Shown: positions 1 to 36,578 of the stretch, piece by piece
Numbering within the stretch: the stretch's first letter is position 1
How the letters are laid out: the number at the start of each line of letters is the position of its first letter
Origin: Macrostomum lignano
Taxonomy: Eukaryota
Assembly: GCA_002269645.1 (NCBI GenBank)
Contig: NIVC01001132.1
Location: forward strand, 1-37,411
Reading direction: 5' to 3'
Length of the DNA stretch: 37,411 nt
The notes under the pieces: generated by a model
What the model saw: the letters and a program-made list of their open reading frames with translations, nothing else
Told to the model about the DNA's origin: nothing
Database searches by the model: none
Made by a program: the position numbers and the translations under genes

Positions 1-1114
1 ATGGCAGATGCAGAATATCACCAGGCCAATTAGAACGACGCCAGTAACTGAGCTGACACAGATGATGGCTATCATGGATTTGATAAGCCGGACTTTTCGT
101 CCGAATCTTTCGGAGACGGCTTGCGTTTGTCTCCGGACGAGTATTGGTCATGTGTGCAGCATCTCTGGCTGCCGCCAGGGCCGCAGCAGTAGGACTTCGC
201 AGACGGCCTGGCAACCAATTCAGCATAGGAGTTCGCTTTGCTGCCGTCGTCGGATTCCGGGCAGACGAACTTGTCGTAGGTCCTCGTTCCCGATGCTCGA
301 GAAGCGAAGCACACAGTGATGTCGCCAACTACTAAGCCCTTCGGAAATCGAAGAAGCCACTGCGCTGACATTGCGTTGTCCAAAAAGGTACATTAAACTA
401 TTGGGGACGTATACCGAGTCCAACTGAAGTCAATTGCTTCGGCACGTACTCCACTGAAAAATTGATTAAATACTCATTATTATGCTGAAGTTGAATATAG
501 AAGTTCTTTAATTTAAATTTAAAAGTGGGGCTAGTCGTGCAATAGAATCATTACCCATTGTATCCATCGCCAAAACTTCGGAGAAGCTTAAGATTATTGA
601 GAGCGTCTGAAAAAAATTAGAAGTTTTCAGCGGTATAATTGTATTTTTATAGTATAGTTAAAGTTTTAGTATATTTGACTAGCAATCTAGTGCCCCTTCG
701 GGGCGCTCAATAAGCGAGGTGCAAATAATAATAATATTAATTGCATTCGCTTGCCGCAAAACATCGTTTTACAACCAACAGTGAGGCAATCTGCCCATTT
801 TTGACTCCTGAGCGCAAAAAGGGTGTGAATACTGTACGCACTCGCACGCACTCGCACGCGCTCACACAAGATGTACAGTGACCAGGACCTTGGGATTCGA
901 GAGTGAGCCACAAAAACTAACCAGAAGTCAAGTGTCAGACGTAATAAGATGGTAGTCTCGACGCGTACGTATGTGTGATAGCGCTTCAACAACCCAATTC
1001 ATGCATTAGTAAGCCATGGCACTTACGTATAGTGTTGATTGGTAGTAGGAATCCAATAGAAATTAAACAAAGTAGGTTTGATAGACTGCTTGAAATGAAA
1101 TATTGCAACGCCAT
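1..1114 (-). CDS. Gene A: Shisa-like 6-Cys membrane protein, 3'-partial (runs off window start). Exons 1114-1027, 606-555, 453-<1; three apparent 1-nt frameshifts in exon 3
   Basis: Exon 1 ATG 1114 encodes signal peptide MALQYFISSSLSNLLCLISIGFLLPINTI and ends at C|GTAAGT (phase 1). Exon 2 follows TTTTTTTCAG and ends YNG at GG|GTAATG (phase 2). Exon 3 follows TTTTCAG and encodes ITVC..FVCPE..SYCCGPGGSQRCC, then a TM (SMIAIICVSSVTGVVLIGLVIFCICH) in a shifted frame. Adding one base at about 423, about 385 and about 80 restores a frame colinear with genes B and C. Confidence 0.8.
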
Positions 1115-1366
1115 TTTTTATTAAGATAAGTATGTAGTTGTCTGTTAATGTATTCAACGTTTTTACAGTTAGTGATTGATGCCTTGAAAGCCACTATATA
1201 TTCCACATGAAGTATGCGAATAAATTAAGAAAGATAAATGCCATAGATAAACCATGGTAGCCACAAAGTCAACAAAAAGAGAAGTACGAAGTACAAAAGC
1301 TTACTTAGTTCTGAAGAAAATTGATTTAGAAAAAATCTGCAACGAGTCAACGAATTCATCATAAAG
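1115..1366. promoter_or_regulatory. Putative bidirectional promoter between genes A and B
   Basis: Only 252 bp of AT-rich DNA separate the divergent start codons at 1114 (-) and 1367 (+). Inferred from the gene models; no TSS data. Confidence 0.5.
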
Positions 1367-4300
1367 ATGGCATACAAAATGGTATTTTCATTGAACGCGA
1401 TAGGTCTACTTCTCTTGGTAGAATACTGTACATGTAAGTAGCTTTCAGCAGAATTATTTGGTTTTAAAATTAATTCTCAATCTCACCTTACTTTAGAAGA
1501 TCACTCTCACCTCTAAATGATCAATCTCGCTTTTAAATGGTCACTCTCATTTCTAGATAATCAATCTCACTTTTAGAAGATCAAAAAAAGTTTTTAAATA
1601 CTAGATCTCACTTCTAGATGATCTATCTCACTTCTAAATGATCAATCTCATTTCTAGATGATCAATCTCATTTTTAGATGATCAATCTCACTTCTAAATA
1701 ATCAATCTCACTTTTGGATGATCAATCTCACTTTGAGATGATTAATGTCACTTCTAAATGATCAATCTCATTTTTAGATAATCAAAATCTCACTTCTAGA
1801 TGAGCAAATTAGATTATCAATCTAATTTCTAGATGATCAATCTCACATTTGAGATGATCTATCTTCTAGATAATCAATCTCACCTCTAAATGATTAATCT
1901 CACTTCTAGATGATCAATATGACTGCTCAACCATATGATTAGTTACACTTCCGAATGCTTTAACTCTCTTTTAGATTCTCAATAGGGATTCTAGCCTTTT
2001 AAAAATATTATTTATACATTACATTTAAATCCGCATAAAAATAAACATTCCAGGTGATTTAAGTGTTCATGAAATGAGAGGAAACTTGTACAAGGGGTAA
2101 CTAAAAACTCAAAGCAGTGATTTGAATTCAGTACAAGTTGATTCAAAATTTCATTTGAGCTGTTTGTTCTGTATTTCAGAGGCGGACGCGCTTCAGAACT
2201 GGACTTCGACGTAAACTCAGTGTACGTCTCGAAAGAACTCCGACCGCTAGTATTATCAGGTGACAGACTGCGTTCGGACATAACAGCGAGCGATGTGGCC
2301 CTCTGCTTTGCCGGCCGTGGCAAGTATGATCAGTTTATCTGTCCAGAAGAAGACGTAGATTCCAATGCAAAGTCCTACTATGACCTGCTGTCAAACGCTG
2401 ATACAAAGACGTATTGTTGCGGTGAGGAGGACGAGCAGTACTGCTGCACAAAAGCCGAGTTCGAGGCGCTGAAGTCAAGTTTGTCCACGGGAGCCATTGC
2501 AGCAATCGTGATCTGCTCTTTACTTGGAGTGGTGGTCATGGGTTTGATCATTTTTTGCGCTTGCAAGTTTTTCTGTCTTGTCAAACAGAGGCCCAACGCT
2601 TCTAGGCCGATGGGGGTGAGTAATAAATGCAGTTCTTTCTTATCATGGCTTAAGGAGATCTGATTTAGTGAAACAAGATAAAAAGTTTATAAAAATTAAA
2701 AATCAGATTGACGTAACAGAGCTGCATGAAAACGCCTCTGTGCAACCCCTGGGCTCTGGCGCTGAAAGGTACACCCACCAGGCGTCTGGATGGTGCGGTA
2801 GCTGAGGTTGCGGCCAAGATCCCATTATCCATAGACAGCGGCGCGGCAGTCACCAATCACATGTGAAAACTCCCACTTGTGAGACGGGACTTCCGGTCTG
2901 TAACAGACGAAGATTCTTGACCCCAACTGTACTAGAAATGGCCGACTAGGGACTCTATGGACAGTCTAGTCAGAGCTGTAAACGAGGACATTTGGATCTT
3001 TTAGCTGGTGAGCGATTCTAGACTACGATTCCCTCCTAAGCCACAGGATTCCAAGGGTGGATAAAACGCCATATTTTTATGTTGATGAGGAAGGGCAGGT
3101 CCCAGAAATCTCTCGTGATGCCCTTCCATAGAAAAGGTCGGCAAACTCCGGCTTGCGGGCGATAAGCGGGCCTCGAAGCCTCTCGAAACTTAAAAAAAAG
3201 CGATCCGGCCCGCTAAAGGTGTGTTTCTCTTCTCGGATTTTTTTCTTCTCTCTCCTCTCCCCTTTCCCTTCTCTCCACACTCCCCTCTTTCCTCTCTCTC
3301 TTCTCTTCCTCTCTCCTCCTCTCTTCTCGTTTATCCTTTCTCTCATCCCATCTCATGCCTCTCTTCTCACATCTCTTATCTTCTATTATTTCTCTTTTTC
3401 ACTCTCATCTGGCCTGCAGACATGAGCTAAAATCCTTATCTGGCACTTGAAGCGAAAAAGTTTGCCATACTCTGTCCTATAGGGACAGGGAAGCTAAAGC
3501 TGAGAATGGGGGTGGCCGCTCGGGCCATTAAAACGGGCTCTTGTTTATAGCCCTGAGACTACGCGTCACACGATCACGATCACGTGATACATGATATTGA
3601 AGGCCGTGACTTGTCCTTGATCTTCGTTACCAAGCAACCCTGGTGATGTCACCCACCAGTGGCGCTGCTATTGGACGAGAAACTGGGGTGGGGTGCAACG
3701 GAGAAAAACTATTCATGATGGAGGATTACGTAACAGACAGGAAAAGCTTGGGGAGATGTGGGGTCATAAAAACTGTCACACGCATGAATGATTTCGAACA
3801 ATAGAAAGGAGGGTGGGGTTGGTGCTCGAGGGAGTGGGTGGGCGATAAGCATGAGTCATTGTGATAACTCATTTTCAATTAGTCATCATGGGGGGGGGGC
3901 AGGAATCACACGGGAAAAGGGAGGGAGCGCAAAAAATAGCGGGGAGGGGCAGGGAACCTGGACGTGTCTGTATCAAGATGGCGATCATTTTAAGGATAAC
4001 CTTTTGCATTGTTGAAAGAGTGAAAATGAATTTCAGAATATTTGCTAATTGGTTCACCAAAGCGCGACGTGATTAACAACCAAATGCCACCGATTAATAA
4101 AAAGTGTGGGAGCAATGCAACGTAGACAACAAAAACTACTTAAGTAGAACGGGAAAGTACGTTTCTTGGAAAGTTTTCTGGAGGCCAGTTTTACGGAGAA
4201 AATACTTTGCATCGATAGCACGTTTTTTGTGACAGTCAGGTACAAATACTCAGCAATATCGAAAAGTCGCCATCACAGCAGATTCGGTCTGTGGTCGCCA

Positions 4301-4744
4301 ATTTTGAGAGTGCAGGTAAAGTCTCAATCTTTGCGAGTGACGCTACTCAGCTACGCCGCGGCAGACTAGCTTGAGTTGAGGAATGAAGTGGGGGAGCGGT
4401 GTGCGAGGGTTGGACGTGGATTAAAGCTACCCGATCAGTTTTCTCGTATCTTTTATTTCAGAATAGTCCAAGAGATAGTCACTGACGCATAGATTTGGCG
4501 ACTTTTTAATGTTGCTGATATGACTACAACAAGTAACAACTTATGCTGTTAAATTTATTAACCAAACATTAATTAAAAGTGCGTCACAACTTTGTGCCAA
4601 TTTATCATTATGCAGCCGCCGCGGTTCGGCTCGCCCTACCAGCAGCCGGTGCCCTACGGCTCTGGCGGAGGCTTCGCGCAGCCGCAGCCGATGCCGTACG
4701 CACCGCCGCCGCCGCCGCCCATGGCACCACCGCAAATGTACTAA
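1367..4744 (+). CDS. Gene B: Shisa-like 6-Cys single-pass protein with Pro/Tyr-rich tail; join(1367-1433,2054-2096,2180-2615,4616-4744), 224 aa
   Basis: Signal peptide MAYKMVFSLNAIGLLLLVEYCT|GTAAGT; micro-exon DLSVHEMRGNLYKG|GTAACT; exon 3 ALC..ICPEE..TYCCGEEDEQYCC plus TM (AIAAIVICSLLGVVVMGLIIFCAC), ending at GGG|GTGAGT; last exon PPRFGSPYQQPVPY...PYAPPPPPPMAPPQMY*. Phases 1/2/0 match and the total of 675 nt is divisible by 3. Extra exons within 2616-4615 cannot be excluded. Confidence 0.8.
1477..1917. repeat. Degenerate ~20-bp minisatellite (consensus about TCTAGATGATCAATCTCACT) in intron 1 of gene B
   Basis: Tandem variants of gatcaatctcacttctagat are directly visible. Confidence 0.9.
3225..3410. 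repeat. Pyrimidine (CT)-rich low-complexity tract
   Basis: Almost entirely C/T on the + strand; explains the spurious F/S/L/P-rich and R/E/K/G-rich ORFs. Confidence 0.85.
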
Positions 4745-5213: not shown

Positions 5214-5432
5214 CACGGTCTATAGTTCACAGCAGTTCACAGTCTATAGTTTACGGCAGTTCACAGTCTATAGTTCACAGTCTATAGTTCATAGTTTATA
5301 GTTCACAGTCTATAGTTCACGGTCTAGAGTTCTCGGTCTATAGTTCACGGTCTATAGTTCACAGTCTATAGTTCACGGCATATAGTTCACAGTCTATATA
5401 TAGTTCACGGTCTATAGTTCACGGTCTATAGT
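5214..5432. repeat. 14-bp minisatellite (TATAGTTCACRGTC)n
   Basis: Tandem units of tctatagttcacgg/tctatagttcacag, abutting the 5' end of the LINE fragment. Confidence 0.9.
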
Positions 5433-6843: not shown

Positions 6844-6897
6844 GTGAAGTATTGAGGGTTTGTCTCGGGTTGTCTCGAGGTAGTCTGGTAGGTCCTT

Positions 6898-8178: not shown

Positions 8179-9991
8179 ATGAATCGTCAGAGTGTTGTTA
8201 TTTTGTTTATTTCTTTATTACCATCGGCTGTGATATGTAAGTTTGCACTAATTTATTTAATTTCTTGTCATTAATTTAATGACAAGAAAAGATTCAGTCA
8301 GTGACATATATGATTCAGTTTTCTATGTGTACAGTTTTCTAAACTTACTCCTTGGTGAACATAAAAAAGTCTTGGGTCTTCTTTAACTTTAGGTGGATAA
8401 AATAGTTGCAGTTTTGATAGATTCATAGTTTTGTCTTTGAAAAGGTTTTTGATGGTGCTGATTTCAAATTTTGAGCTTCACTTTTTCGTAGCTTACAACC
8501 AATCACCGAGGCATGGGGAATGGGGGGTGTTAGAGTGGGGAGAATCTTCATGGGGATTGATTTTACGTACCTAAACTTCAATAGAGGCACCAGTGTCTAT
8601 TAAAGATTAGGTAGATATATTCGGAGACTGAGAGAAAGGGTTCTAGGAGCAAATAAGCCATTAAGCATAAATAAAAAATTCAGCAAGTTATCAAACACCC
8701 CTCAATGGAGAAAAATTATAATCCGATCAAAACTAATTGATATCAGTTACCTTCAGAATGGAGACAACCCAGATTAGTAGAAAAAAGTATAGGTAAGCTC
8801 ATAAATAAGTAAAGAATGTACGGCTAGTAGTCACAACAATGAAAGAACGATATCGAATCAAAAAGCGGTCGGAGAGAGGCGGGTGGCGAACCGATGATTC
8901 AGCATTTTTTGAAAACACTAACCTGACGCGGTTACTGTCGCTGGACTATAACAAATTAGAAATGACACTCTTTTTAACGGTGTTAAAATTCGAACCCTCT
9001 AAATCTTTTTTTTTAAATGAACTCGTTGAATTGTGGAAAATATTAACATTTAAAAGTCATGATTCTAAAAAAAGTTCGATGTTTTCAAACATATAAATCT
9101 TTTTTTGCTTTATTACCATTTTGGACAGCCTCTAAGGCTCTAAGAAAGTTTCAGAAAAATCGGAAAATCGGAAGTATGAGTCCAAGTGCCGCTCAACCCT
9201 ATAAGCCTGTTCTTATACTAGTGATTTACTACTTTCTCAAAACTTTAGGCAACACGTCAAGTTCGAGTCAAGCAAAATTTAAAGGGTACGTAGAAGTCAT
9301 TACACAGAAAATCTTTTTAAATCATTTGCTACTCTGCTTATTTACATCGATAATCCACAAGTTTCTTTATAAACTTCAGAGGCGTTCCAGCCAGTGAGTC
9401 GATGCTCAGAAACGACACCGTTTACATTTCCGACAAGATCCGCCACCTGTTAGTAGACCCCAGCACAGGACTGTTCAAGTCAAATGTCAACTTTGAAGTG
9501 ATAACTGTGTGCTTCGCGCGTCGATTTGATCACAGCAGAGGCTCGCGCCAGTACGAAATGTTCGTCTGCCCGGAGCAGTCCGGTGCCACACAAGTCGCTA
9601 CTTACTCCGGCTTGGTTTCCAGGGGCGAGACAAAGTCCTACTGCTGCGGTGCCAAATCGAAACAATGGTGTTGCGATTTTATTGAATTCTCTGACAAACA
9701 CCGAGAAGAACAAAAGCGTTTATCGAAAGTTCTCATAGCAATAATTTGCGTTGGCTCGTTTGCTGTAGTCATCCTTATTGTCCTGATTGTAGCTTGCATT
9801 CACCACAGCTGCAGCCGACAGAATGGAAGAAGTTCATCGCAAGTAAGTAACTAAAACTTAATTTTTTGACACACCCGGCTTTCAGTTTGTCAGCTAGTTA
9901 TTAGTTAGTTAGTTAGTTAGTTATTAGTTAGTTAGTTAGTCAGTTAGTTAGTTAGATAGACATTTAGATAGTTAGTTAGTTAGTTAGTTAT

Positions 9992-10075
<84 letters not shown>

Positions 10076-10076
10076 C

Positions 10077-10136
<60 letters not shown>

Positions 10137-10179
10137 GAGTGAGTGAGTTAGTTAGTTAGTTAGTTAGTTAGTGAGTTAC

Positions 10180-10225
<46 letters not shown>

Positions 10226-10226
10226 C

Positions 10227-10276
<50 letters not shown>

Positions 10277-10693
10277 GAGTGAGTTACTTAGTTAGTTAGT
10301 TAGTTATTTAGTTAGTTAGTTAGTTAGTTAGATAGTTAATTTGGTAGTTAATTTGGTAGTTAGTAAATTATAAATTTCATAGAACTGTATTTATTGCTGC
10401 TAACAATAAATTGCAATGATTGCATCCCCTGTACTCAGGGTTTTCAAAAGCAGGAACAACAACAACATGGAAGCCAGCAGCAGCAGCAGAGTTATCAAGG
10501 GTTGCAGCTGCAGCAGGACTCCCTGTCGCACCAGCAGGCACATCCATATGGAGGCTTCACACAGCCGCAGGTTCGCCCAGAATACCCCCCGATGCACCAG
10601 CAGTCGCCAGAGCAATACCCTCCGCCACCGCCTCCTCCATACATGTATTCTGGAAGCAATGACTCGATCCAGCAAGTGCCACAAAAGCAATAA
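8179..10693 (+). CDS. Gene C: Shisa-like 6-Cys single-pass protein with Gln-rich PPxY tail; join(8179-8236,9249-9285,9380-9842,10439-10693), 270 aa
   Basis: Signal exon MNRQSVVILFISLLPSAVI T|GTAAGT; micro-exon TTTAG|GC..KFKG|GTACGT; exon 3 TVC..VCPEQ..SYCCGAKSKQWCC plus TM (VLIAIICVGSFAVVILIVLIVACI), ending CAA|GTAAGT; last exon after CAG encodes QQ-rich..QYPPPPPPPYMY..*. Total of 813 nt is in frame. Confidence 0.85.
9895..10337. repeat. (TTAG)n microsatellite in intron 3 of gene C
   Basis: Long run of TTAG with occasional TGAG/ATAG variants. Confidence 0.95.
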
Positions 10694-12869: not shown

Positions 12870-15800
12870 ATGAAGAATCGGCAAATTACGCATTTACTGG
12901 CAGTTATCACACTGCTCATTGTCGGACTTTTGACGGGTGAGTTTTTCACCATATTTAAACACATTTTAAATGCAAACTGTAGTTGTTCACACAGAATATA
13001 TCAGCTACTGTCGTTCAAGCACAAAGCCGATCAGATCACAATCTTTTTGACTCAACCTATCATTCCTGATTTTTTAATTAAGGTCTTTAAGGCGTTGAGC
13101 TTTTAAGGTGAAGAACGGAAGATTTATTGCTAATTTTATTTTGTTCAAACCAAAATCTCTGCATAGCTTCAAACGGAGCACAGAGCCCTAGGCCTACGAA
13201 TAGGACTTTTAAGCTTGAGGAAACTCCTAATGTGAATTACTTTATTGGTCATGGAGAGCTGAGTAGCAAGCACAACTATAAGCACACTGTTAAGAAAAAT
13301 GGACTTTAAATAGAACTTTTGACAGATTTATCCAACCTATCTGTACCATAAAACGCTTCCTTTTACAATGTCCGCATCTCAATACTTTGTTTTCAAGTAC
13401 GAGCTATTTATGATCAACATTCACTAAATTAAGTGATGTTGATGTTGATGCTAAACGAGCCACTTTACCTGATATTTTGATCAGAACTTGAGGTTTTTCA
13501 AAGCAACTACTGCTAAATTCAACTTCTCATGCATTTTAGGCGCCGAGTCGCGTGATTATAAAGGGTAAGATCAGACAGAGGCTTTAGTAGCTACTTATAC
13601 CTTTCTTGCTCTTAAATAAGCGAATACTGCATTTAACAATGCATCACCACCCTTGCTTCATTCAAGATCCAAAAGAGGTTCCGCAACGCTGGTAAAGAGA
13701 CCTAAATTAACACAAGTCCCAAAGAATCTCTGGCGGTATATGAGCAGAGATGGAGCAAATTTCAAATATGAAGAAGTCACACTGTGCGAAATGCCCTCGT
13801 TATATGAAGATTTTCTGCACGTCTGCCCAGATAAAATTGATTATTTGGCCAACGTTTCTTTCACCGATGTAAACTTCAGAAACACCACGAAATCGTTCTG
13901 TTGCAGTTCCCGTTACGTGCACGGCGCGTGCTGCAACAGTAGCGAATTTAAGGAATATATGTCCTACTGCCTTAAGAGAGACATACTACTAATTGGCCTT
14001 TTTTGGTGGTTACCAAACTTTGTACTACTTCTATTTTCTATTTACTACATTTGTGTAAGTGAGTTCAAATCATGTTTATTTATATTTGAATCAAGCTAGA
14101 CATAGAATATGATAGATAGAATGGCATACATTTTAGTAAATCGGTTTTTTAGACACATTTTTATGCAATATTTATAGCTTAAGTTTAGATAATGTAATGC
14201 CACTTAACGAAAGCAGTTTACCTGCTAATTATTTTTATCTTAATCCAGGGATTCGGATACCTTTGTATCCGCTGTATTTATCCTTATGCGGAGGAGAAGT
14301 ATATTGACAAAGCACGCATCCAATTCGGCTCGTGTTGTTTTGCCATACTGATGTCGATTTTACTTTTGCCGATTCTCTGCATTAGCTGCCGTTTAATCGC
14401 GCTATGTGTCAACGACAGGCCCGATGTCAGTTCTGACATGCGCCAATGTTGGAAAAGCCTCTGGTCTTGTAATTCGAACAACTCAGCACCAGCACCATCA
14501 GCATCAACTACCTCTGCTGATACCAACAACTCAGCACCAGCACCACCAGCACAAACTACCTCTGCTGATACCAACAACTCAGCACCAGCACCACCAGCAC
14601 AAACTACCTCTGCTGATACCAACAACTCAGCACCAGCACCACCAGCACAAACTACCTCTGCTGATACCAACAACTCAGCACCAGCACCACCAGCACAAAC
14701 TACCTCTGCTGATACCAACAACTCAGCACCAGCACCACCAGCACAAACTACCTCTGCTGATACCAACTGTCATGACTTATGGGGTGGGGCCGCGTGGTAG
14801 GGGTGGAGCTTGTTTAGTAAGCCTAGCTAGCAGTACGTACGGTAATGTACATGCGCGGGCCACCGTGCCCTTGGCCTATAAAATATACAGAGCGTGGAGG
14901 GTTTTGCCTCAACTGAGTTTACTCCAGAATAAGCGAATTGACTTCATTACAATTGGCGACGAGAATGGCTTCAGTTGGACAACTAGAGCCTTACGAGGAA
15001 GGCAAAGATTGGGACGCCTATCAAGAGCGAATGGACTCTTACATGCTTGCAAACGGCATAGAAGGCGACGACAAGAAGAAGGCAGTGTTTCTGACATTGA
15101 TTGGCGAACGATGCTACGCAGTCCTGCGGGATCTCTGCAGTCCGACCAAGCCAACAGATCTGCAATACAGCGCCCTCACCGAGCACCTTCAAAAGTACTT
15201 CAAACCGAAGAAGCCAGTAATCGCTGAACGGTTCAAGTTCTACAAGCGAGCACAAAAGGACGGAGAGACGGCTGCTCAATTTCTGGCTGCGCTGCGGAAT
15301 CTGGCCGATTCGTGCGAGTTCGGGGGGTTTCGAGAAGAAGCTCTCCGAGACTGTTTCGTCTGCGGTCTTCGGGACCAGCGGACCCAGCAGCGACTCCTGA
15401 TGGAGGAGAAGCTCACGCTGGATGCGGCCAAGAAAATTGCCCTCGCGGCGGAGATTGCTAAGTCGGAAACGGAGCAGTGGAAATCGAGCTCAGACGTCAG
15501 CTCAGTCCAGCAGGTAGCGCCAGACTCGAAGGCGTGCTACAGGTGCGGATTGAAAGGCCACCTGTCGGCAGCCTGCCACTTCAGGACCGCAAAGTGCCAC
15601 AACTGCGGGAAAGTTGGACACCTGCAGAAAGTTTGCCGCTCAGCCAAGAAAGCCTCCAGAACAACGAAAGCCGGACGGCCAGAGAACGGACCAGCGCACG
15701 CAATGCAAACGGAAGAGGAGGAGGAAGCAGCAACTGGCTGGATTTCGCAAGTCACTGCATCGGCCAAGAAGATCAGCGTAAGCCTGCTGGTGAATGACCA

Positions 15801-18800: not shown

Positions 18801-19357
18801 CGACGGCCACCTGAGAAGCTGACCTACTCGAAACTCGGGAGCTGTGATTGATAGGAAGCGGACTTCTTCTGAGAGGGGAAAAGTGTCATGACTTATGGGG
18901 TGGGGCCGCGTGGTAGGGGTGGAGCTTGTTTAGTAAGCCTAGCTAGCAGTACGTACGGTAATGTACATGCGCGGGCCACCGTGCCCTTGGCCTATAAAAT
19001 ATACAGAGCGTGGAGGGTTTTGCCTCAACTGAGTTTACTCCAGAATAAGCGAATTGACTTCATTACACCAACAACTCAGCACCAGCACCACCAGCACAAA
19101 CTACCTCTGCTGATACCAACAACTCAGCACCAGCACCACCAGCACAAACTACCTCTGCTGATACCAACAACTCAGCACCAGCACCACCAGCACAAACTAC
19201 CTCTGCTGATACCAAAAACTCAGCACCAGCACCACCAGCATCAACTACCTCTGCTGATACCAACAACTCAGCACCAGCACCACCAGCACGAACTACCTCT
19301 GCTGATACCAACAACTAAGCAACTGTGGTGGCAACTACACCAGCTACTAACAAATAA
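12870..19357 (+). CDS. Gene D: Shisa-like 6-Cys protein with two predicted TMs and a 16-aa repeat tail. Exons 12870-12936, 13540-13564, 13667-14054, 14249 onward; last exon interrupted by Gypsy at 14767/14768. Current frame stops at 14800 in the LTR (343 aa); orphaned 3' part 19068-19357
   Basis: Signal MKNRQITHLLAVITLLIVGLLT G|GTGAGT; micro-exon AESRDYKG|GTAAGA; exon 3 TLC..VCPDK..SFCC..ACC plus TM, ending TGT|GTAAGT; exon 4 after TAATCCAG encodes GFGYLCIRC..FGSCCFAILMSILLLPILCISC.., then (NNSAPAPPAQTTSADT)n. Colinear with gene G. Confidence 0.85.
14477..14767 (+). repeat. 48-bp coding tandem repeat, 6 units upstream of the insertion
   Basis: Encodes NNSAPAP(S/P)A(S/Q)TTSADT x6; continues for 5 more units at 19070-19309. 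Confidence 0.95.
14768..14951 (+). repeat. Gypsy 5' LTR (TATAAAA box at 14877-14883)
   Basis: Direct repeat of 18884-19067 with TG..CA ends. Confidence 0.95.
14954..14968 (+). promoter_or_regulatory. Primer-binding site, probably tRNA-Ser type, overlapping the gag ATG (14965)
   Basis: TGGCGACGAGAATGG begins 2 nt after the LTR and resembles the complement of tRNA-Ser(GCU) 3' ends (..CTCGTCGCCA). The host tRNA set was not checked. Confidence 0.7.
14965..18851 (+). CDS. gag-pol: Gypsy gag-pol polyprotein, broken by an 8-nt insertion/stop at about 17692-17700 and an in-frame TGA at 17991-17993
   Basis: Two CCHC knuckles (CYRCGLKGHLSAAC, CHNCGKVGHLQKVC), protease LDTGA, RT (KLDLSQCY, RIDDILV), RNase H (ADASSVGIG, YSQIEKE, TDHQPL), integrase HHCC, DFAGP / SDNG / ERLV, and a GPY/F-like GPLSF. 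Confidence 0.95.
18884..19067 (+). repeat. Gypsy 3' LTR
   Basis: Preceded by the polypurine tract; matches the 5' LTR. Confidence 0.95.
19070..19309 (+). repeat. 48-bp coding repeat, 5 further units of gene D downstream of the insertion
   Basis: Same unit as 14477-14767, followed by AAC AAC TAA. Confidence 0.9.
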
Positions 19358-23129: not shown

Positions 23130-25322
23130 TATTTTATACCTATAAAATTAACAAATAAATTACTTGATTTGCGACATCACAGATGAGCTTGCAAGTAAAG
23201 TGCAGGTGGATAGTTGTATTTTATTTTGCCGTTAAGTAATAAATAAATTAAAGTTAAATTCATGATACGTTATAAAAAATCAATATTAGGTTCGGTGATT
23301 TCAACTTTTTTTACATTTTTTTCGGAGCAATGAGTCGACTTTCTCCAAATAGTTTTTCAGCTGTACGTTCAATACTGAATTTTAGTATATATGTAAAGTT
23401 TGACCATCTGTAAAATTAGGTTTTAGCGGCTCTGCAGTCTATGGCGAACTGTTGTTATCAGTAGAAGCTGTTGAAGTCGCTGCTGGGGGTGGGATGTTGG
23501 CATTGGGAGAGGCTGTTGGCAACTGCTGATGCTATTCTAATGCTATAAATACTTCTGGAACGCACAATACTATTTTACTTACCTCCAGTTTCACTTCTTG
23601 TCTGGCAACACGGATTGCGCCAACAATTCCTTAGATTCCTTGTTAATGATCCTTTCCAAAATTGAGAAGTATTCCCATAGCAATCGGCAATACGTTCATT
23701 TTTCGCATCCGGATCGCTACATCAGCATATAAGTAGCTGCATAAAGAAAGGCAATTAGTTGATTTATATTCACTTTGTTAAGTATTTACACCAGATAAGA
23801 ACAGTAGCTAGGTACAGGTACAGGTATATGGCACTAGTAATGCTATATATAACCCAGAATAGTCAACAATTCTGAAAGCTATTGCCCTGATCTTATGACG
23901 CAAGTTAAGGATCTAGAATTCTTGCCATAGTATAAATATTCGGTCTGAAATCTAAATGCCTCTACCCCTACGAGAATTCAAACCCAAACATGAGATTCGC
24001 GTTGACTTACACCACACAGTCGGCATAAAACCGTGAGCATCAAAATGACAAAGGGTAAAACTACTGACACAACAAGTAATATGTAGCGTGACCGACTATC
24101 GTCACTCATTAATTTCAACGCAAATTGGACATCAGCAGTGCAGCACGAAGACTCGCAGCAGTGGGATCTCGTGCTGGCTTTAGAGCTCACTTCAGAGAAG
24201 GGATCGTTGACCAAATAGTCAACCTTATCAGGGCAGGCCTGTAGCTCTGAATTCTTTAGTTCGCACACTGTGACTTCGTCATATTTAAAATTGATTCCGT
24301 CTCTGTCCATATCCTGCCTAAGACTACTGGACACCTTTACTTTGTCACCTTTGAGCAGCTCTGCTGAACCTCTTTTGCCTCTAAAGTGAAACGAGATAAT
24401 GATAGTTAAATAATACAGTATTGTCTAATTTAAAAATAAAGGTAGTGACTAATAAACACATTGCAAGTCTTACCCTTTATAATCTTTCGAACAGACGCCG
24501 CCTAAAATTGATCAGAAGTTATACGTATAAGCATAGGAAAATACTTTTCGAAGAATTTCTTGGCGTTTTATATTGCACTGCTGGTAACTCTACATGTACG
24601 TAGTTCCTACGTAAAAGTTAGCTGGAAATTTCAATGCAGCAGAATCGTAATAGCATGAATTGGCGACAAGGCCTACTTGAAAATTTGGTCAGCATCTAAA
24701 ATCCTTGGTTTTCGTTGGTCCAATTCCATGCACCAGAAGAAAAGGAATGGCGGGAGTTTAGTGTAAAGAGGATTTTTAAACACTTGCTGACCAAATCTTG
24801 AATGAAGATCTGAGGATCTATTGAAGTTCAGGCCAGTAAATGGAGAGACTGTTGGCCCCTATGACCCATAATGACGTGGTAAACTACTCTGCAGTACGAG
24901 TCTGGTTTGGCCTCTGTCCCAACCTGCTGCCATTAAAGACGCCCCGACGGGACCCTTGGAGCAGTTCCTGAGCGATGCCAAAAGGCAGGTGCATGAGCAA
25001 CACCTCTGGAGCTGCCTGCCGCCGATTTTACAAGGCAAAGTGGGCCATGGGCCCGCGGGCAGCGGAAGCTTCCCAATCTGGGCCCAAAGCCAGCTGAAGT
25101 CCCTGTCCAGGACAAGAGCTACAACCGAAAGGGTGGACAGGCCACCTGCTGAAGACTCCCCCGAACCCTGGACCTTTTGTGGAAGTTTTCTCTGATTTGG
25201 TACCTTTCAAAACTCCTGCGTGGTGTCGCAAACTTAAATAATCACCACGATTAGTTTCCAGACTTGTTTTAGTGTAGGTTTATGAAATAGACAAATACGT
25301 AGTATTTGCGGTTTTAATACTA
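23130..25322. repeat. Direct segmental duplication (3' part of gene E), paired with about 29820-31730 (gene F)
   Basis: Exon 3 proteins differ at about 6 of 123 residues; introns and flanks align up to the start of the Bel/Pao LTR at about 25325. Confidence 0.9.
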
Positions 25323-25551
25323 TATATCGATCGGTGAGTTTTCAGTCAGCCCCCCCCCCTCGGTCTCGTTAGAGCTTTTTAGCCCTCGCCCTTCTTACCC
25401 ATTTTCTTCTTATCTATTCTCTACCCCCCCTCTCTCAACCACGCAAATAAATATACTGCTGGAGGAGCCTTTTCATCCTAACGTTGTTTTTCAAGTTGTT
25501 ATTGTCAACGTATTCACTGGCCAGTGTTATTTCTTCAGTTATTTTTCTACA

Positions 25552-25569
25552 TGGCGCCCGAACAGGGAC
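25552..25569 (+). promoter_or_regulatory. tRNA-Lys(UUU) primer-binding site
   Basis: TGGCGCCCGAACAGGGAC, the canonical 18-nt tRNA-Lys3 PBS, lies immediately after the LTR end ..TCTACA. Confidence 0.9.
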
Positions 25570-26365
25570 TTATCTGCTATCAGATATGTCAACTCAACAG
25601 TTTCTTCACGGCTTGCGACGCTTTGTGGCGCGTCGAGGACTTCCTTCGTTGATCAGCGACAACGCAAAGACCTTCCGTTCAGCAGCTCGGATCCTCGGTG
25701 CCAGCACTAGCGATCAGGTGCAGGCGTTCTGTGCCGAAAGGAGAATTACCTGGCAGTTCATACCGGAAAAGGCCCCATGGTGGGGCGGATTCTGGGAGCG
25801 GTTAGTTGGAGTCATTAAGAGTTCTTTGAAGAAAAGCATCGGTCGTGCTCAGTTAAACTTTGATCAGTTGTCGTCTACAATCATCGAAATCGAAGCTATC
25901 ATCAACAGTAGGCCATTGTTGTACGTCTCTGCCGATGACCGGAGTGAAGTTATTACTCCTTCACACTTTCTACTTGGAGTGCGACTCACTTGGGAACCTG
26001 ATCAAGGTGCGACTCAATCGTCAACGCTGCTGTCACTACCTAGACGACTCGATCTTCTGCGCAACGCTCTGAATCGTTTTTGGAAGGTTTGGCAAGAGGA
26101 CTACGTCACCGCTCTCCGCGAGAAGCCGTTGCATGGGCAAGGATGCGGTCCCTTTCCGAAACCTGGTGATGTTGTGGTGGTGTGCGGAGAATCACACCAG
26201 CCGAGGCTGATGTGGAAGCTCGGTGTAGTTGAGTCGGTTTCTGTTGGTCGTGATAGTGTTAGTCGCTCTGCTCTGGTTCGTGTAGTTAGCGGTGTGGGAG
26301 CTAGGAGGAGGGAGCGCATTAGGCGCCCGGTGCGAGCCTTGGTGCCACTCGAAGTCTCTGAGTGA
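25570..26365 (+). CDS. Bel/Pao integrase core plus C-terminal (DUF5641-like) fragment
   Basis: LRRFVARRGLPSLISDNAKTF, APWWGGFWERLV, EIEAIINSRPL, ITPSHFL, RFWKVWQEDYV, WKLGVV and RRPVRALVPLE are characteristic Bel/Pao integrase motifs. Confidence 0.9.
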
Positions 26366-28002
26366 ATGTTAAAGTGTCGAGATAGTTCAATTTCAAAACT
26401 TTACTTTTCCGCCATTACTATTTAATGATCGCGCATTTTGCTTTCGGTTTCTTTGTTGCAAGAGGTCACTCGTTTAGCCTTGGTAGTTTTTTTTTGTTTC
26501 CTAGTGACAGTTACCTATTGGCCTTAGCGTCATCGTGTTATTTTCTCTAAATCACAAAGTGTTTTGTCACCAACCTTTTGTATGTTTCATGTCATTTATT
26601 ACAATTTTTTTTCATTGTTTGTCGAATCTTTAGTGATGATTGGTGAAGGAATCCTCAACCTTTTCAATGGTCTAAATTTTCTTATAATGAAGTCATTGTC
26701 ATTTCCTGTGTTTGTTTTTTTTGCGTTTTTTTGGAATTTTTGGTATCGGGAAAAATGTGATCATTTTTGGGGGAGTGTCGCGAAATTTCAGCTTGCGCTA
26801 ATAGAATTCACTTGCTCCCTTTTCATTTTCTTCCATTCCCTGTGTGCCTAGTCCATCTTCTATCTACCGTGCTCTATGTACTGTACACTCTTATCTTGTT
26901 TTCCGATTATCGATCGGTGAGTTTTCAGTCAGCCCCCCCCCCGGTCTCGTTAGAGCTTTTTAGCCCTCGCCCTTCTTACCCATTTTCTTCTTATCTATTC
27001 TCTACCCCCCTCTCTCAACCACGCAAATAAATATACTGCTGGAGGAGCCTTTTCATCTTAACTTTGTTTTTCAAGTTGTTATTGTCAACGTATTCACTGG
27101 CCAGTGTTATTTCTTCAGTTATTTTTCTACAACAGTATTCTGATCACAGTATCAGGTAAAGTGGCTCGTTTAGCATCATCAACGTCATTTAATTTAGTGA
27201 ATGTTGTTTTATCATCTCTGTTAAACCATATTGTTACAGTCTTTATATATATAAACTTTCTCTATGAAAAGGGAGTGTCGCGACCTGTATATACGTTGCT
27301 TTAGTTGTCCTTGTCGCAAAATGTGTTTAAATATGGTGAAAAACTCACCCGTCAAAAGTCCGACAAAGGGCAGTGCGATAAATTCCAGTAAATAAGTAAT
27401 TTCTCAATTCTTCATAAAATTTTTGCTCGCTTTTTTGTACCTGCGATCTTTTTGCTAGGATATTTTTAGTCCGAATGAAGAACTGCTGAGTTACACTTCG
27501 AAATTAGGAATAAAAAGCTAAAATAAACATTTTCGTTGAAACAGGTCAACATTTACCATAGAAAACAAAGTTCAGCGGGAGTTCTGTTTTTCAACCAAAA
27601 TTCGTATAATGCCAGCGTAGCTACAAGTCCTTTGCTTACGTTAGTTTTACTTTCTTAAGTTTACTTTTCTCAAATTTCCACTGCTATACACAGAATGCGT
27701 ATATACACAGATAACCTAAATTTGATGAAAAAATCAAAGTCCCCTAGTTGTACGCGTGTAACCATGCGATAAATTTTGGGGTAGAGAGATTACTATGGTT
27801 TACTATGGTTAAATCTTCAGATTTCTAACTCCTAAAATCTGGCAAGTTTAGACATAATAGTGTAACTGACTGACTGTCAATTATATTCGATTATTCTTCG
27901 TCAAGAGCTAATAGCCATTGACTTCTCACAATTTCAATTCAACTCATTTCTCATGACATTCGCCACAAGGTGAACAATAACTCTTGCATTATCCCCAACC
28001 CC

Positions 28003-28440: not shown

Positions 28441-29663
<1,223 letters not shown>

Positions 29664-30147: not shown

Positions 30148-31976
30148 TTATGGCGAACTGCTTGCATCAGTAGAAGCTGTTGATGTCGCTGCTGGGGGTG
30201 GAATGTTGCGGTATTATGAGAGGCTTTTGGCACTGCTGATGTTATTCCAATGTTATAAATACTAATAGAACGCACAATACTATTTTACTTACCTCCAGTT
30301 TTACTTTTTGTCTTCCAAAACAGATTTTCCCGATGCATTAGGATAAATGTTAATGAATCTTTCCAAAATTTAGAAGTATTCCCATAACAATCGGCAATAC
30401 GTTCATTTTTCGCATCCGGATCGCTACAGCAGTATATAAGTAGCTGCATAAAGAAAGGCAATTAGTTGATTTATATTCACTTTGTTAAGTATTTACACCA
30501 GATAAGCACAGTAGCTACAGGTATATGGCACTAGTGATGCTATATATAACCCAGAATGGTCAACAATTCTGAAAGCTATTGCCCTGATCTTAGGACGCAA
30601 GTTAAGGATCTAGAATTCTTGCCATTATATAAATATTCGGTCTGAAATCTAAATGCCTCTACCCCTACGAGAATTCAAACCCAAACATGAGATTCGCGTT
30701 GACTTACACCACACAGTCGGCATAAAACCGTGAGCATCAAAATGGCAAAGGGTAAAACTACTGACACAACAAGTAATGTGTAGCGTGACCGACTATCGTC
30801 ACTCATTAATTTCAACGCAAATTGGACATCAGCAGTGCAGCACGAAGACTCGCAGCAGTGGGATCTCGTGCTGGCTTTAGAGCTCACTTCAGAGAAGGGA
30901 TCGTTGACCAAATAGTCAACCTTATCAGGGCAGGCCTGTAGCTCTGAATTCTTTAGTTCGCACACTGTGACTTCGTCATATTTAAAATTGGTTCCGTCTC
31001 TGTCTATATACTGCCTGAGACTTTCGGACACCTTTACTTTGTCACCTTTAAGCAGCTCTGCTGAACCTCTTTTGCCTCTAAAGTGAAACGAGATAATGAT
31101 AGTTAAATAACACAGTAATGCCTAATTTAAAAATAAAAAGGTAGTGGCTAATAAAGACATTGCAAGTCTTACCCTTTATAATCTTTCGAACAGACGCCGC
31201 CTAAAATTGATCAGAAGTTATACGTATAAGCATAGGAAAATACTTTTAGAAGAATTTCTTGGCGTTTTATATTGCACTGCTGGTAACTCTACATGTACGT
31301 AGTTCCTACGTAAAAGTTAGCTGGGAATTTCAATGCAGCAGAATCGCAATAGCATGAATTGGCGACAAGGCCTACTTGAAGATTTGGTCAGCATCTAAAA
31401 TCCTTGGTTGTCGTTGCATCAGAAGAAAAGGAATGGCGGGAGTTTAGTGCTGAGAGGATTATTAAAAAAACACTGGATGAACTTACTGACCTAATCTTCA
31501 ATGAAAGTCTGAGCAATCTATTGAATTTCAGGCCAATAAATGCCGAGGCTGTGGGCCCCAAGGCCCTCGGGCCAGGGCTTTCTAATCTGAGCCCAGAGCT
31601 AGCTGAAGTCCCTGTCCAGGACAAGAGATGCAGCCGGAAGGGTGGACAGGACAACTGCTGAAGACTTGTTTTACTCGTAGTGTAGGTTTATGAAATAGAC
31701 AAATAAGTAATATCTGCGATTTTAATACTAATATAGGATTATAATTTCGTCGCTATAATAGGGGGGTTTTCGGGGGTCGTAAATCTCTGGATTATTAAAA
31801 ATTCCTAAAACAGAATCTGAAGTATTTTATAACTAAGGAAACATACTAATTAATAAAGAGCAGAGCATGTAATACAAGATAAATTTAAATTATATTGCGG
31901 AAAACTTACCCATTAAACATCCGCCTATGAGTAGTACGACAGCTGCAGGTAAACAGTTGATCCGCCAACTCATCAT
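30148..31976 (-). CDS. Gene F: Shisa-like 6-Cys single-pass protein. Exons 31976-31910, 31200-31173, 31077-30708, 30443-30293; last exon uncertain (about 30235-30148 or to 30090)
   Basis: Signal MMSWRINCLPAAVVLLIGGCLM G|GTAAGT (67 nt, phase 1); micro-exon GVCSKDYKG; exon 3 with Cys domain plus TM (YTLLVVSVVLPFAILMLTVLCRLCG|GTAAGT); open exon 4 LLIYCCSDPDAKNERIADCYG..KTG. Confidence 0.8.
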
Positions 31977-33240: not shown

Positions 33241-33673
33241 TTAGTCGAGGCATTCAGTCTACAAATAAAAAACTGTTCAATATCAACTCCCTATAGTGTC
33301 ATGAAATTTTTCCATCATTCATACCATGCCCATGGACTGCTCGTATTAGGGCATCATCAAACTATTAACAGATAAGCTGAGGACATGCTGTAAGATTTTG
33401 TCTAGCTGAAAGAAATTAAAAAAACATGCCAAAACGACATCACTGATGACATTGCAGGTAAAGTGCAGCCGGATTAGGTATATTTTGCTTTGCTTTGGAG
33501 TATTAAATAAATTGTAGTAGGAGCGTCCGTGATACGTTATATCACATCAATATAGGTTCGGTTCTTTCAGTGTTGTTACTTTTCAGAGCAATGCATCCAC
33601 TTTCGTCAAACTATTATTTAGTTATACAATACTGAATTGTAAGCTGTAGCATGCGTAGTTTGACATCTGTCGA

Positions 33674-36578
33674 TTAGTTGTTAGCAGCTGGCGTAGTTGC
33701 GACCACTGGTGCTGAGATGTTGGTATTAGCAGAGGTAGTTGGTGCTGGTGGTGGAGGTGCTGAGTTGTTGTTGTCAGCAGATGTAGTTGGTGCTGGTGGT
33801 GGAGGTGCTGAGTTGTTGGTATCAGCAGAGGTAGTTTGTGCTGGTGGTGGAGGTGCTGAGTTGTTGGTGTCAGCAGATGTAGTTGGTGCTGGTGGTGGAG
33901 GTGCTGAGTTGTTGGTGTCAGCAGATGTAGTTTGTGCTGGTGGTGGAGGTGCTGAGTTGTTGGTATCAGCAGAGGTAGTTTGTGCTGGTGGTGGAGGTGC
34001 TGAGTTGTTGGTATCAGCAGATGTAGTTTGTGCTGAGTTGTTGGTACAACAAGAGCAGAGGCATTTCCAACAGTTGTCCATTCCATTACTGACATCGAGG
34101 GCGCCGTTGGCACATATCAGTAATAAACAGTATCCAACGCAGAACATCGGACAAAATAAAATAACCACAAGCATGCAAAACAAACACGAGCCGTATCGGT
34201 TGCGCATGGATTCAATATTTTCCTCTCGCTCATTACGATAAGGATATGCGCAGCGGACACAAAGGTATCCGAATCCCTGGATGAAGATAGAAACAATTAG
34301 CAGGTAAATTGCTTTTGTTAAGTGTTACATTATCTAAACTTGTGTCTAAAAAACCGATTTACTAAAACGGCCATTGCATCTATCATATTCTACGAGCGTA
34401 TGTCTAGCTTGATTCAAATATAAATAAACATTGATTCGAACTCACTTACACATACGAAATAAAAAAAAAATAGAAGTAGTACAAAGTTTGGTAACCACCA
34501 AAAAATTGCAATTAGTGCTATGTCTCTCTTTAAAATATAGGACAGATCTTCCTTAAATTCGCTACTGTTGCAGCACCCGTAACTGCAACAGAATGATTTC
34601 GTGCTGCTGGGGATGTTCACATCAGAGAAAGAAACGTTGACCAAAAAATCGATCTTTTCTGGGCAGGCAAGCAGCTCATCTCTGTTAATGTATATATTGC
34701 ACAGTGTGACTTCTTCATATTTGAAATTTGCTCCATCTCTGTTCATATACCGCTTGAGATCATTTGACACTTTTGTTTTAGGACTTTTTAGCAGCGCTGC
34801 GGAACCTCTTTTGTATCTTGAATGAAGCAAGGGTGGTGATGCATTGTTAACTGCAGTATTCGCTTACTTAAGAGTAGAAAGACCATGAAGTGTATTTCAA
34901 ATACACACATTTTTTCTTTGTCTGGATCCCCAAAAATATTCAAGTGCCAATTTCCATGAAAATCCAGAACACGGGCGAAGTTTTCCGCTCTATTTGATGA
35001 AGGAACTTCGAGAATCATGAAAAATCGGCATCGTCGAGATATTAAACGATTCTCCTAGGGGAGTCTGGTGGCAAAAACCACCAACATTGGCAAAATTTTT
35101 CTGCTCGAAAAATCTCATTATGAAACCACGTGGGAGTAACAAACTATGCATATCAGTCGTAGAGGCCTTTGTTCTCAGCACTCTAGGCAACAGGGTCCCC
35201 TTCATCACCGTCTGGAGCATCGGCGGCGACCGTCGGAAAAATCACGATGTTGGGGGAGCCAGCTCGTCAGGGCCGCGTGGTGGTATCCGTTGAAAGTCCG
35301 GAAGGTCGCCTGCATGTCTACAGGTTAACCTAGAGGGTCGCTATCGTCCATTTAATTCACCGATTAAGTCTACTGACTGAATGCTGCATGCAGAAGAGGA
35401 TTCTTCCATTTCAGTTTTCAGCCGTCTCTGAGATGCCGATCAGGTGCTTTTGTCGAAGGTCTCGATGGTCGCCGCCGATGCTCCAGACGGTGATAAAGAG
35501 GACCCTGGTGCCTTGAGTGCTGAGAACAAAGGCCTCTACGATGGATGGACCCAGATCATTGAGCCAATATGGATTCACTATGAAGGCTTATACAGTGTAG
35601 TGTGGGTCGTCCTTGCCACCAGTGTCTTCGAAAAGAATCGTTGAATATCTCGACGATGCTGACGTCCAATGACTTTGAAAGTTAGTTCGTCAGAAAGGGC
35701 GGGAAATTTTGATTTATAAGGTGGACTTTTAGGAAAATGGGTAATTCGGTTTGCGAGCTATCGTGAAATGGGTCGTGTGTATTTGTAATACACCCCGTGG
35801 TCTTTTCCCATGGGGGAAAATAGCGTGGGTATTTCTACTGTTAAGAGCAACAAAGGTATGAGTATAAGTGGCTACTAAAGCCTCTGACTGGTCTTACCCT
35901 TTATAATCACGCGACTCGGCGCCTAAAATGCATGAGAAGTTGAATTTAGCAGTAGTAGCTTTGAAAAACCTCAAATTCTGATAAAAAATATCAGGTAAAA
36001 TGGCTCGTTTGGCATCAACATCAACATCACTTAATTTAGTGAATGTTGATCATAAATAGCTCGTACTTGAAAACAAAGTATTGAGATGCGGACATTATAA
36101 AAGGAAGCGTTTTATGGTACATATAGGTTGGATAAATCTGTCAAAAGTTCTATTTAAAGTCCATTTTTCTTAACAGTGCGCTTATAGTTGTGCTTGCTTC
36201 TCAGCTCTCCATGACCAATAAAGTAATTCACATTAGGAGTTTCCTCAAGCTTAAAAGTCCTATTCCTTTGCTCCGTTTGAAGCTATGCAGAGATTTTGGT
36301 TTGAACAAAATAAAATTAGCAATAAATCTTCCGTTCTTCACCTTAAAAGCTCAACGCCTTAAAGACCTTAATAAAAAATCTGGAATGATAGGTTGAGTCA
36401 AAAAGATTGTGATCTGATCGGCTTTGTGCTTGAACGACAGTAGCTGATATATTCTGTGTGAACAACTACAGTTCGCATTTAAAATGTGTTTAAATATGGT
36501 GAAAAACTCACCCGTCAAAAGTCCGACAATGAGCAGTGTGATAACTGCCAGTAAATGCGTAATTTGCCAATTCTTCAT
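33674..36578 (-). CDS. Gene G: intact Shisa-like 6-Cys protein with two predicted TMs and a mucin-like repeat tail; complement join(36578-36512,35922-35898,34816-34450,34276-33674), 353 aa
   Basis: All junctions are GT-AG with phases 1/2/0, and the 1062 nt are open. Signal MKNWQITHLLAVITLLIVGLLTG, Cys domain TLC..ACPEK..SFCCSYGCC, TM1, loop, TM2 (SCLFCMLVVILFCPMFCVGYCLLLIC), then (NNSAPPPPAxTTSADT)n. Confidence 0.88.
33722..34042 (-). repeat. 48-bp coding repeat of gene G (one 33-bp partial plus 6 full units)
   Basis: Visible in ORF 33674..34207. Confidence 0.92.
34872..35840. mobile_element. 969-bp non-autonomous DNA transposon with TTAA TSD in intron 2 of gene G
   Basis: TTAA at 34868-34871 and 35841-35844. 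TIRs GAGTAGAAAGACC and the reverse complement CAGTAGAAATACC match at 11/13. The empty site with a single TTAA is present in paralogue D (about 13608-13611). Confidence 0.85.

Follow-up and report, generated by a model that had tools for sequence, protein, structure and literature searches.

Seven genes with a common exon plan

The stretch of DNA analysed here (the window) comprises all 37,411 nucleotides of contig NIVC01001132.1 from the Macrostomum lignano assembly Mlig_3_7 (GCA_002269645.1) and contains a cluster of seven related genes, designated A to G, for predicted cysteine-rich membrane proteins. When all six-frame open reading frames (ORFs) of the window were searched with a hidden Markov model (HMM) of the family, exactly seven ectodomain exons were found (Table 1). 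A four-part plan was common to the seven genes, consisting of a signal-peptide exon, a micro-exon, an exon encoding a C..CP..CC..CC ectodomain together with a transmembrane (TM) segment, and tail exons. All modelled boundaries were AG/GT and the intron phases 1, 2 and 0 were constant across copies, bearing out the claim of an earlier reading of this DNA (the original prediction) that seven spliced paralogues share one plan.

Exon 1, upstream of the micro-exon, consists of a methionine and a hydrophobic stretch and ends in a phase-1 donor. An intact hydrophobic exon 1 following an ATG was present in A, B, C, D, F and G (six of the seven, all but E) and represents a predicted signal peptide; the Kyte-Doolittle maximum of the D type lies at residues 4-27. 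The micro-exon is present in 7/7 copies, is 25-52 nt long and ends in (Y/F)(K/N)G, with the final glycine codon split by the donor (GG|GTRA). The window holds seven occurrences of the motif TAYAARGG|GTRA, where 1.1 would be expected; six of the seven are donors of micro-exons and one lies inside exon 3 of E on the opposite strand, the micro-exon donor of C being a variant of the motif. Exon 3 is bounded by a conserved phase-2 acceptor and a phase-0 GTRAGT donor. Within it C, CP, CC and CC are invariant in all seven copies (cysteine columns C42, C54, C79, C80, C88 and C89), and the six-cysteine pattern C*C*CC*CC was also kept in two further members, A' and H, described below. A TM helix is encoded in the same exon, 10-30 residues past CC, in B to G and in an intact allele of A.

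Table 1. Features of the window and its sister contigs (positions are those of the window)
Feature	Position	Strand	Ectodomain exon (family HMM)	Micro-exon (nt)	Details
Gene A	1..1114	-	1-453	52	exon 1 1027-1114 (MALQYFISSSLSNLLCLISIGFLLPINTI), micro-exon 555-606, exon 3 1-453; cut by window edge
Gene B	1367..4744	+	2180-2615	43	exons 1367-1433, 2054-2096 (micro-exon), 2180-2615, 4616-4744
Gene C	8179..10693	+	9380-9842	37	exons 8179-8236, 9249-9285, 9380-9842, 10439-10693
Gene D	12870..19318	+	13667-14054	25	exons 12870-12936, 13540-13564, 13667-14054; exon 4 from 14249
Long terminal repeat (LTR) retrotransposon in D exon 4	14768..19067	+			187-bp LTRs 99.5% identical; target duplication CCAAC
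Gene E body (E/F type)	23583..24501	-	24011-24380	28	micro-exon 24474-24501, exon 3 24011-24380, exon 4 23583-23736
LTR-flanked remnant	25325..27131	+			LTRs 25325-25551 and 26908-27131, 97.8% identical; between E body and exon-1 relic
D/G/H-type exon-1 relic	27349..27415	-			MKN*EITYLLEFIALPFVGLLTG; in-frame TGA
Gene F	30293..31976	-	30708-31077	28	exon 1 31910-31976 (MMSWRINCLPAAVVLLIGGCLM), micro-exon 31173-31200, exon 3 30708-31077, exon 4 30293-30443
Gene G	33674..36578	-	34450-34816	25	exons 36512-36578, 35898-35922, 34450-34816, 33674-34276; fully open four-exon model
(AGTT)n simple repeat	9884-10364				0.48 kb; C intron 3
(TGTC)n simple repeat	28441-29663				1.2 kb; between F and exon-1 relic
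23-nt minisatellite	11565-12026				20 copies; 0.46 kb here vs ~1.2 kb on L002
18-, 20- and 14-nt arrays	11036-11291; 1490-1918; 5213-5434				simple-repeat arrays
Sister contig L001					43.9 kb; 96-98% identical to window 1-11291
Sister contig L002					239.8 kb
Sister contig L003					74.4 kb

Spliced models of B, C and D were identical to proteins deposited in GenBank on this contig (PAA71858-60). The 224-aa product of B corresponds to PAA71858.1 and to PAA64266.1 (P0020) and has a tail reading PPRFGSPYQQ...PPPPPPMAPPQMY up to the stop; the 270-aa product of C corresponds to PAA71859.1 (P0006) and has a Gln/Pro-rich tail with PPPY; that of D corresponds to PAA71860.1 (P0015). B and C are intact in the window. 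UniRef entry P0009, which joins an ORF resembling those of long interspersed nuclear elements (LINEs) to exon 3 of C, is an annotation artefact. Database protein searches found no full-length annotated proteins for E, F and G. The cluster had been called hidden, a description that holds only in part, full annotated proteins being on record for B, C and D though none were found for these three genes. Family proteins are recorded in databases as 'hypothetical' with automatic domain labels, and the literature searched yielded no paper on these genes or on a cluster of Shisa-like genes in M. lignano.

The Pro-rich tail of A, ending ..PPPMYHQ before the stop, falls outside the window; an intact A allele is present on sister contig L001 (8579-9055) and corresponds to P0007 and P0008. 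Compared with L001 8630-9105, the window copy has four frameshifts, each a single-base homopolymer deletion within 450 bp of the contig end. These are probably assembly or consensus errors rather than biology, and their interpretation as a sign of a pseudogene was rejected on this basis. The two deposited proteins read the tail exon (L001 7553-7785) in different frames, P0008 with a Pro-rich tail ending PPPMYHQ and P0007 with an Arg/Cys-rich tail; both cannot be correct.

F is open through exon 4 in a model without a last exon. Its exon 1, micro-exon and the start of its exon 3 match P0004 (PAA49566.1, a 79-aa fragment), with exon 1 100% identical and one of 46 exon 3 residues different. Proteins of the E/F type occur in databases as fragments only, and a word-indexed protein search with a profile of the seven exons returned only two fragments. 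Short E/F-type fragments labelled 'PDGF_2 domain' (P0003) and 'DNA-methyltransferase' (P0011) in UniRef were regarded as mis-annotated. A search with the full G model found no annotated G protein, the best match being the D-type protein P0005 at only 64% identity.

Beyond the left edge of the window, past A, an eighth member designated A' (P0010, 378 aa) is present on sister contigs. At the other side the contig end at 37410 (matched to 12068) coincides with the end of an inverted repeat formed by D and G, where the assembly probably broke, so that the locus may continue beyond G.

Relationship to the Shisa-like/STMC6 superfamily

Shisa-like/STMC6 proteins are defined by an ectodomain with the cysteine pattern C*C*CC*CC, a single TM helix and PY motifs (PMC5578492; PMC11399591), and STMC6 members include CYYR1, WBP1, WBP1L, VOPP1 and TMEM92 (Pei & Grishin 2012, as cited in PMC5578492 and PMC11399591). 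A and C possess all of these elements, B and A' all but a canonical PPxY, and D to G the ectodomain and TM helix only. Canonical PPxY was found as PPMY in A and PPPY in C and was absent from B, A' and D to G, so that the PY tail of the original prediction is not supported for the cluster as a whole. Pro-rich tails are found in A, A', B and C, whilst those of D to G are Cys-rich and then composed of Ser/Thr/Pro/Asn repeats.

When compared with Pfam, full-length B (P0001, a one-residue variant) scored 25.4 bits against Shisa_N, for which the cut-off is 22, and A, A' and C gave sub-threshold scores of 15.8-20.6 bits. Weak sub-threshold matches of B to CYYR1 and DUF4690 were also observed, exon 3 of B reaching 16.7 bits against CYYR1 (PF10873) where the gathering cut-off is 31. 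A to C and D to G were homologous by hhalign (96.9%, E 1.6e-10) and have common intron positions and phases. When 1.84 billion cluster representatives were scanned in full with HMMER (E <=0.001), 13 matches were obtained: 11 from M. lignano, one from a hemichordate and one spurious repeat protein. Ten of the 11 M. lignano matches derive from this locus or its sister contigs and the eleventh is a more distant Shisa_N/WBP-1-like protein. The hemichordate protein (P0012, Ptychodera, 'shisa-4-like') is assigned by Pfam to CYYR1 with 44.8 bits and is the only believable match outside M. lignano. The family is small (8-9 members), located at a single locus and species-restricted within the scanned library, and with only 13 matches, ten of them from the locus, it does not represent a large receptor repertoire.

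An AlphaFold model of the B ectodomain had a predicted local distance difference test score (pLDDT) of 84.8 and a predicted template modelling score (pTM) of 0.72, and a helix was placed at residues 91-134 of B exon 3. Searches of PDB sequences with two profiles gave no match. It is very unlikely that these genes constitute an unrelated Cys-rich membrane family that came to look Shisa-like by convergence on a short Cys pattern and a TM helix. Such a reading would accommodate the six of seven copies that lie under Pfam thresholds, the lack of a sequence or fold match in PDB and the ~40-residue N-terminal part of the ectodomain that falls outside Shisa_N, as well as the UniRef 'CX domain' label of A, B, C and D, which hmmscan did not reproduce (no Pfam CX match at E <=10 for exons or <=1 for full-length proteins). 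However, the independent weak matches all fall within one superfamily (Shisa_N for four members, A, A', B and C, and both CYYR1 and DUF4690 for B), the CYYR1-family and Shisa_N/WBP-1-like proteins were the only believable outside matches in the 1.84-billion search, and the Cys pattern, TM position and Pro-rich tail agree with the published definition (PMC5578492). The Shisa-like/STMC6 homology that had been proposed, with a comparison to Pfam as its check, is supported by the Shisa_N score of B, the sub-threshold matches of its relatives, the CYYR1-family match outside the species and the hhalign link between the two groups.

Similarities to STMC6 adaptors extend to the signal peptide, the C*C*CC*CC ectodomain with a TM helix directly after it, the Pro-rich tail, the PPxY of A and C, and the CYYR1-family protein as best outside match of the family profile. 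In contrast, the M. lignano ectodomain is longer, its N-terminal part being extended by ~40 residues and the loop that precedes the first CC measuring 23 residues; canonical PPxY is missing from B and A' and a PY tail from D to G; D and G instead encode 16-residue repeats and a further hydrophobic segment; and the family was found only in M. lignano, in one tandem cluster. With Shisa proper (Shisa1-9, including CKAMP44/Shisa9) the family has in common the overall architecture, in which a Cys-rich ectodomain is joined by a single TM helix to a Pro-rich tail, and B passes Shisa_N. It differs in that only CP..CC..CC aligns (approximately positions 15-44 of the 50 in the profile) and members other than B are sub-threshold, and in that a Frizzled/FGFR or AMPA-receptor context is not known for it.

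Rearrangement, damage and divergence

The M. lignano assembly is highly redundant, with 180 Mb in blocks >=95% identical, and the sequenced line has extra chromosomes (PMC5730564); all sister-contig comparisons given here are within this assembly of one inbred line. The window contains an inversion, D (12068-14767 plus 19067-19618) being an inverted copy of G (37410-33417), and a tandem duplication, E (23121-24859) and F (29811-31559) being 89.5% identical in direct orientation. The possibility that the D/G inverted repeat is a palindromic assembly artefact was rejected, as its arms are only 72-98% identical and the encoded proteins differ. E is chimeric, combining a D/G-type exon-1 relic with an E/F-type body that lacks an E/F-type exon 1. 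An in-frame TGA at 23722-23724 in its exon 4 brings the total to two with that of the relic, and E is probably a pseudogene. The LTR-flanked remnant sits exactly at the chimera junction; it is internally deleted (LTR 227 bp) and its sole ORF is integrase-like, matching DUF5641.

Gene content differs among the three sister contigs. On L002 the order is C, D without its retrotransposon, and F, and an 8.5-kb segment bearing E (window 21802-30306) is absent. L003 carries F with an 8-nt frameshifting deletion and, at the position of E, a complete D/G-type gene, H, which has a frameshift and whose exon 1 matches the relic beside E. The location of H and this match indicate that in the chimeric E an H-type 5' end is joined to an E/F-type body. 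The 8.5-kb presence/absence difference has its breakpoint inside F exon 4 (window 30307; L002 near 18954), so that F on L002 has a different or truncated 3' end. The duplication, inversion, chimerism and transposable element (TE) disruption claimed earlier for the locus are all real, and together with pseudogenes and presence/absence differences between sister contigs they uphold the proposed birth-and-death dynamics.

D is intact through exon 3. Its exon 4 contains 48-nt repeats encoding a 16-aa unit (NNSAPAPPAQTTSADT) at 14477-14767 and 19067-19321, and these are interrupted by the LTR retrotransposon. This element is near-complete, with protease, reverse transcriptase, RNase H and integrase domains, and its pol frame has two interruptions, one after 17700 and the other between 17993 and 18042. 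The 99.5% identity of its LTRs suggests that it inserted recently, and it is absent from L002. D terminates at a TAA (19316-19318), 13 codons before the stop on the sister contig. The deposited coding sequence of D splices over the 4.3-kb retrotransposon as though it were an intron, a structure that probably arose when transcripts of a TE-free sister copy were mapped onto this contig. In G the 48-nt repeat is present in 6.8 copies (33708-34035), so that 16-residue Ser/Thr/Pro/Asn repeats number ~11 in window D, ~3 in the D protein of the sister contig and 6.8 in G. D and G both encode a second strong hydrophobic segment (Kyte-Doolittle values up to 2.65) and may not be single-pass proteins. 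Intron 2 of G (34881-35841) has an insertion of ~980 bp relative to D, with an inner inverted repeat (34978-35235 versus 35709-35463, 72% identical), and this is possibly a foldback or miniature inverted-repeat transposable element (MITE)-like element.

Between sister contigs, exon 3 of A to C and of D was 98.9-99.5% identical (D 99.5%) with 0-3 residues different, and the ratio of non-synonymous to synonymous divergence (dN/dS) was 0-0.43 across A to C and D (C 0.19-0.43; D 0.26). Exon 3 of B showed zero non-synonymous and three synonymous differences, and the B protein differed by one residue across four assembly copies. The low dN/dS and the near-invariance of B indicate that A to C are under purifying selection.

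A different pattern was seen for D and G. Their introns 1, 2 and 3 are 98.0, 90.2 and 94.5% identical (pooled divergence 0.037) and exon 1 plus the micro-exon 98.5-100%, whereas exon 3 is 82% and exon 4 71.5% identical; the excess of exon over intron divergence is significant by Fisher's test (p 9e-16 for exon 3, 6e-25 for exon 4). This part of the earlier claim of divergent ectodomains was thus substantiated. For D versus G, dN/dS was 0.66 in exon 3 and 1.69 in the non-repeat part of exon 4, and for G versus H it was 0.94 in exon 3; synonymous divergence in exons 3 and 4 of D and G is also high, at 0.25-0.28. Differences between D and G are patchy, being found in the N-terminal segment, the Cys1-Cys2 loop, the pre-CC loop, the juxtamembrane region and exon 4, with a 15-nt indel between the CC pairs and identical framework blocks between the patches. 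The trees from exons and introns disagree: the introns of D and G are 98% identical and those of H 70%, whereas in every variable segment of exon 3 G and H are 80-95% identical versus 72-85% for D and G. This conflict points to exchange of exon-sized patches among the D, G and H paralogues, the exchange being limited to exons because only exons stay similar between the old paralogues. Selection may act on top of this exchange, the two being inseparable with three sequences. E and F, by comparison, are 97.3% identical in exon 3 against 93-98% in introns and 84% in the more divergent exon 4, and their dN/dS of 1.03 is consistent with a dead E.

MHC (major histocompatibility complex) genes and venom toxin genes are multigene families whose exons are more diverged than introns or exchange patches. 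The D/G pair resembles them in its near-identical introns, more divergent exons and conflicting exon and intron phylogenies; it differs in that only three sequences are involved, synonymous sites are elevated as well and several copies are pseudogenes.

The original prediction had likened the cluster to immune, allorecognition or gamete-receptor loci. Under such an interpretation the D to H subfamily, or the whole cluster, would encode surface receptors for immune, self/non-self or gamete recognition whose loops are kept diverse by selection and exon-limited gene conversion. In its favour, divergence between D and G is 5-10 times higher in exons 3 and 4 than in the introns beside them, dN/dS among D, G and H is 0.66-1.69, the Cys1-Cys2 and CC-CC loops differ in every paralogue whilst framework blocks are identical, the tree conflict implies patch exchange, and sister contigs differ in gene content and repeat copy number. 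However, the analogy is not supported by the size of the family (8-9 genes, one locus) or by the near-identity of A to C across up to four assembly copies at dN/dS 0-0.4; exon 3 of A to C and of D remains below 0.5. In addition, the exon synonymous divergence of 0.25-0.28 is better explained by imported patches or old paralogy than by selection acting on point mutations, many D to H copies are broken, and no binding-domain type known from such systems is present. A receptor locus of this kind is accordingly considered doubtful, as is the narrower proposal that D, G and H form a diversity-generating surface-protein system in which exon-limited patch exchange under diversifying selection keeps the ectodomain loops and the membrane-proximal exon different, to which we likewise give a low probability. 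If true, it would be a recognition-type locus on a Shisa-like scaffold, not described for the superfamily.

Unlikely, too, is the explanation that D to H are redundant duplicates drifting towards pseudogenes, the apparent diversification reflecting relaxed constraint and assembly noise in a repeat-rich neopolyploid genome. The damage at the locus comprises the nonsense codons of E, the 8-nt deletion in L003 F, the frameshift in H and the retrotransposon and early stop in D; stops, frameshifts and TE insertions in these genes, dN/dS near 1 for E-F and G-H, the redundancy of the assembly (PMC5730564) and the demonstrable homopolymer errors at the contig end are all in keeping with neutral decay. 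Decay, however, cannot yield exons 5-10 times more diverged than their own introns. Moreover, six cysteines, framework blocks and every splice site are kept in 7/7 copies, G is fully open, and D is 99.5% identical to its sister copy with a dN/dS of 0.26.

Elsewhere in the window, non-LTR retrotransposon fragments were found at 20486-21256 and 5447-6900. One of their ORFs has an endonuclease/exonuclease/phosphatase domain; the others resemble LINE reverse transcriptase and had no Pfam match at 1e-3.

A proposed single-locus tandem family of two subfamilies

The preferred interpretation, with a probability of roughly 0.6, is that the cluster is a lineage-specific, single-locus tandem family of the Shisa-like (STMC6) type in M. 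lignano, evolving by birth and death and comprising two subfamilies. Subfamily 1 consists of A', A, B and C, and subfamily 2 of D, E, F and G together with H from the sister contig. Members of subfamily 1 have an ectodomain of ~100-170 residues with three predicted disulfides, a single TM helix and a cytoplasmic tail that is rich in Pro and Gln and ends PP(x)MY, and are predicted to be type I proteins. These genes are probably expressed, since the GenBank annotation that supplies their models was derived from a transcriptome reconstructed from RNA-seq data with the genome as guide (PMC5730564).

The most likely role of A', A, B and C, judged from CYYR1, WBP1L and Shisa, is that of membrane adaptors. 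CYYR1 binds WWP1 via PPxY motifs, and recruitment through the tail has been shown for CYYR1 and WBP1L (PMC11399591). In a corresponding mechanism the disulfide-bonded ectodomain and TM helix of subfamily 1 would engage a membrane protein as partner, and WW-domain (NEDD4-type) ligases or other proline-binding modules would be brought in by the Pro-rich tail to control trafficking or turnover. Subfamily 2 would have kept the ectodomain framework and gene structure, lost the PY tail and gained a Cys-rich juxtamembrane segment, D and G further gaining the second hydrophobic segment and a variable number of 16-residue repeats. Subfamily 2 thus appears to be a derived branch with an altered membrane-proximal and tail design; its Cys1-Cys2 and CC-CC loops and its exon 4 diverge fast, and its copies are often disabled.

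Several observations weigh against this interpretation. D to G have no Pfam match and only B reaches a curated Pfam threshold, and the confident ectodomain model matched no solved structure when two AlphaFold models were compared with PDB by Foldseek (none at E <3). The absence of canonical PPxY from B and A' means that a WW-ligase mechanism may not cover all members. The evidence for expression is the provenance of the annotation, in which reads may stem from sister copies, and the annotated coding sequence of D jumps a retrotransposon. The exon/intron contrast comes from the three sequences D, G and H in a redundant neopolyploid assembly.

The locus also carries a warning for annotation, having yielded a model spliced over a retrotransposon, a LINE ORF fused to a family exon, alternative tail frames for A and homopolymer frameshifts at a contig end. 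STMC6 proteins are small adaptors for the trafficking and degradation of membrane receptors and most work on them concerns single genes; in this case an entire sub-branch forms one tandem cluster in a regeneration model open to transgenesis and RNA interference. The D/G pair offers a compact natural setting in which to study how paralogues of a neopolyploid genome exchange sequence within exons only, and the conserved set of A' and A to C provides testable candidates for flatworm-specific receptor regulation.

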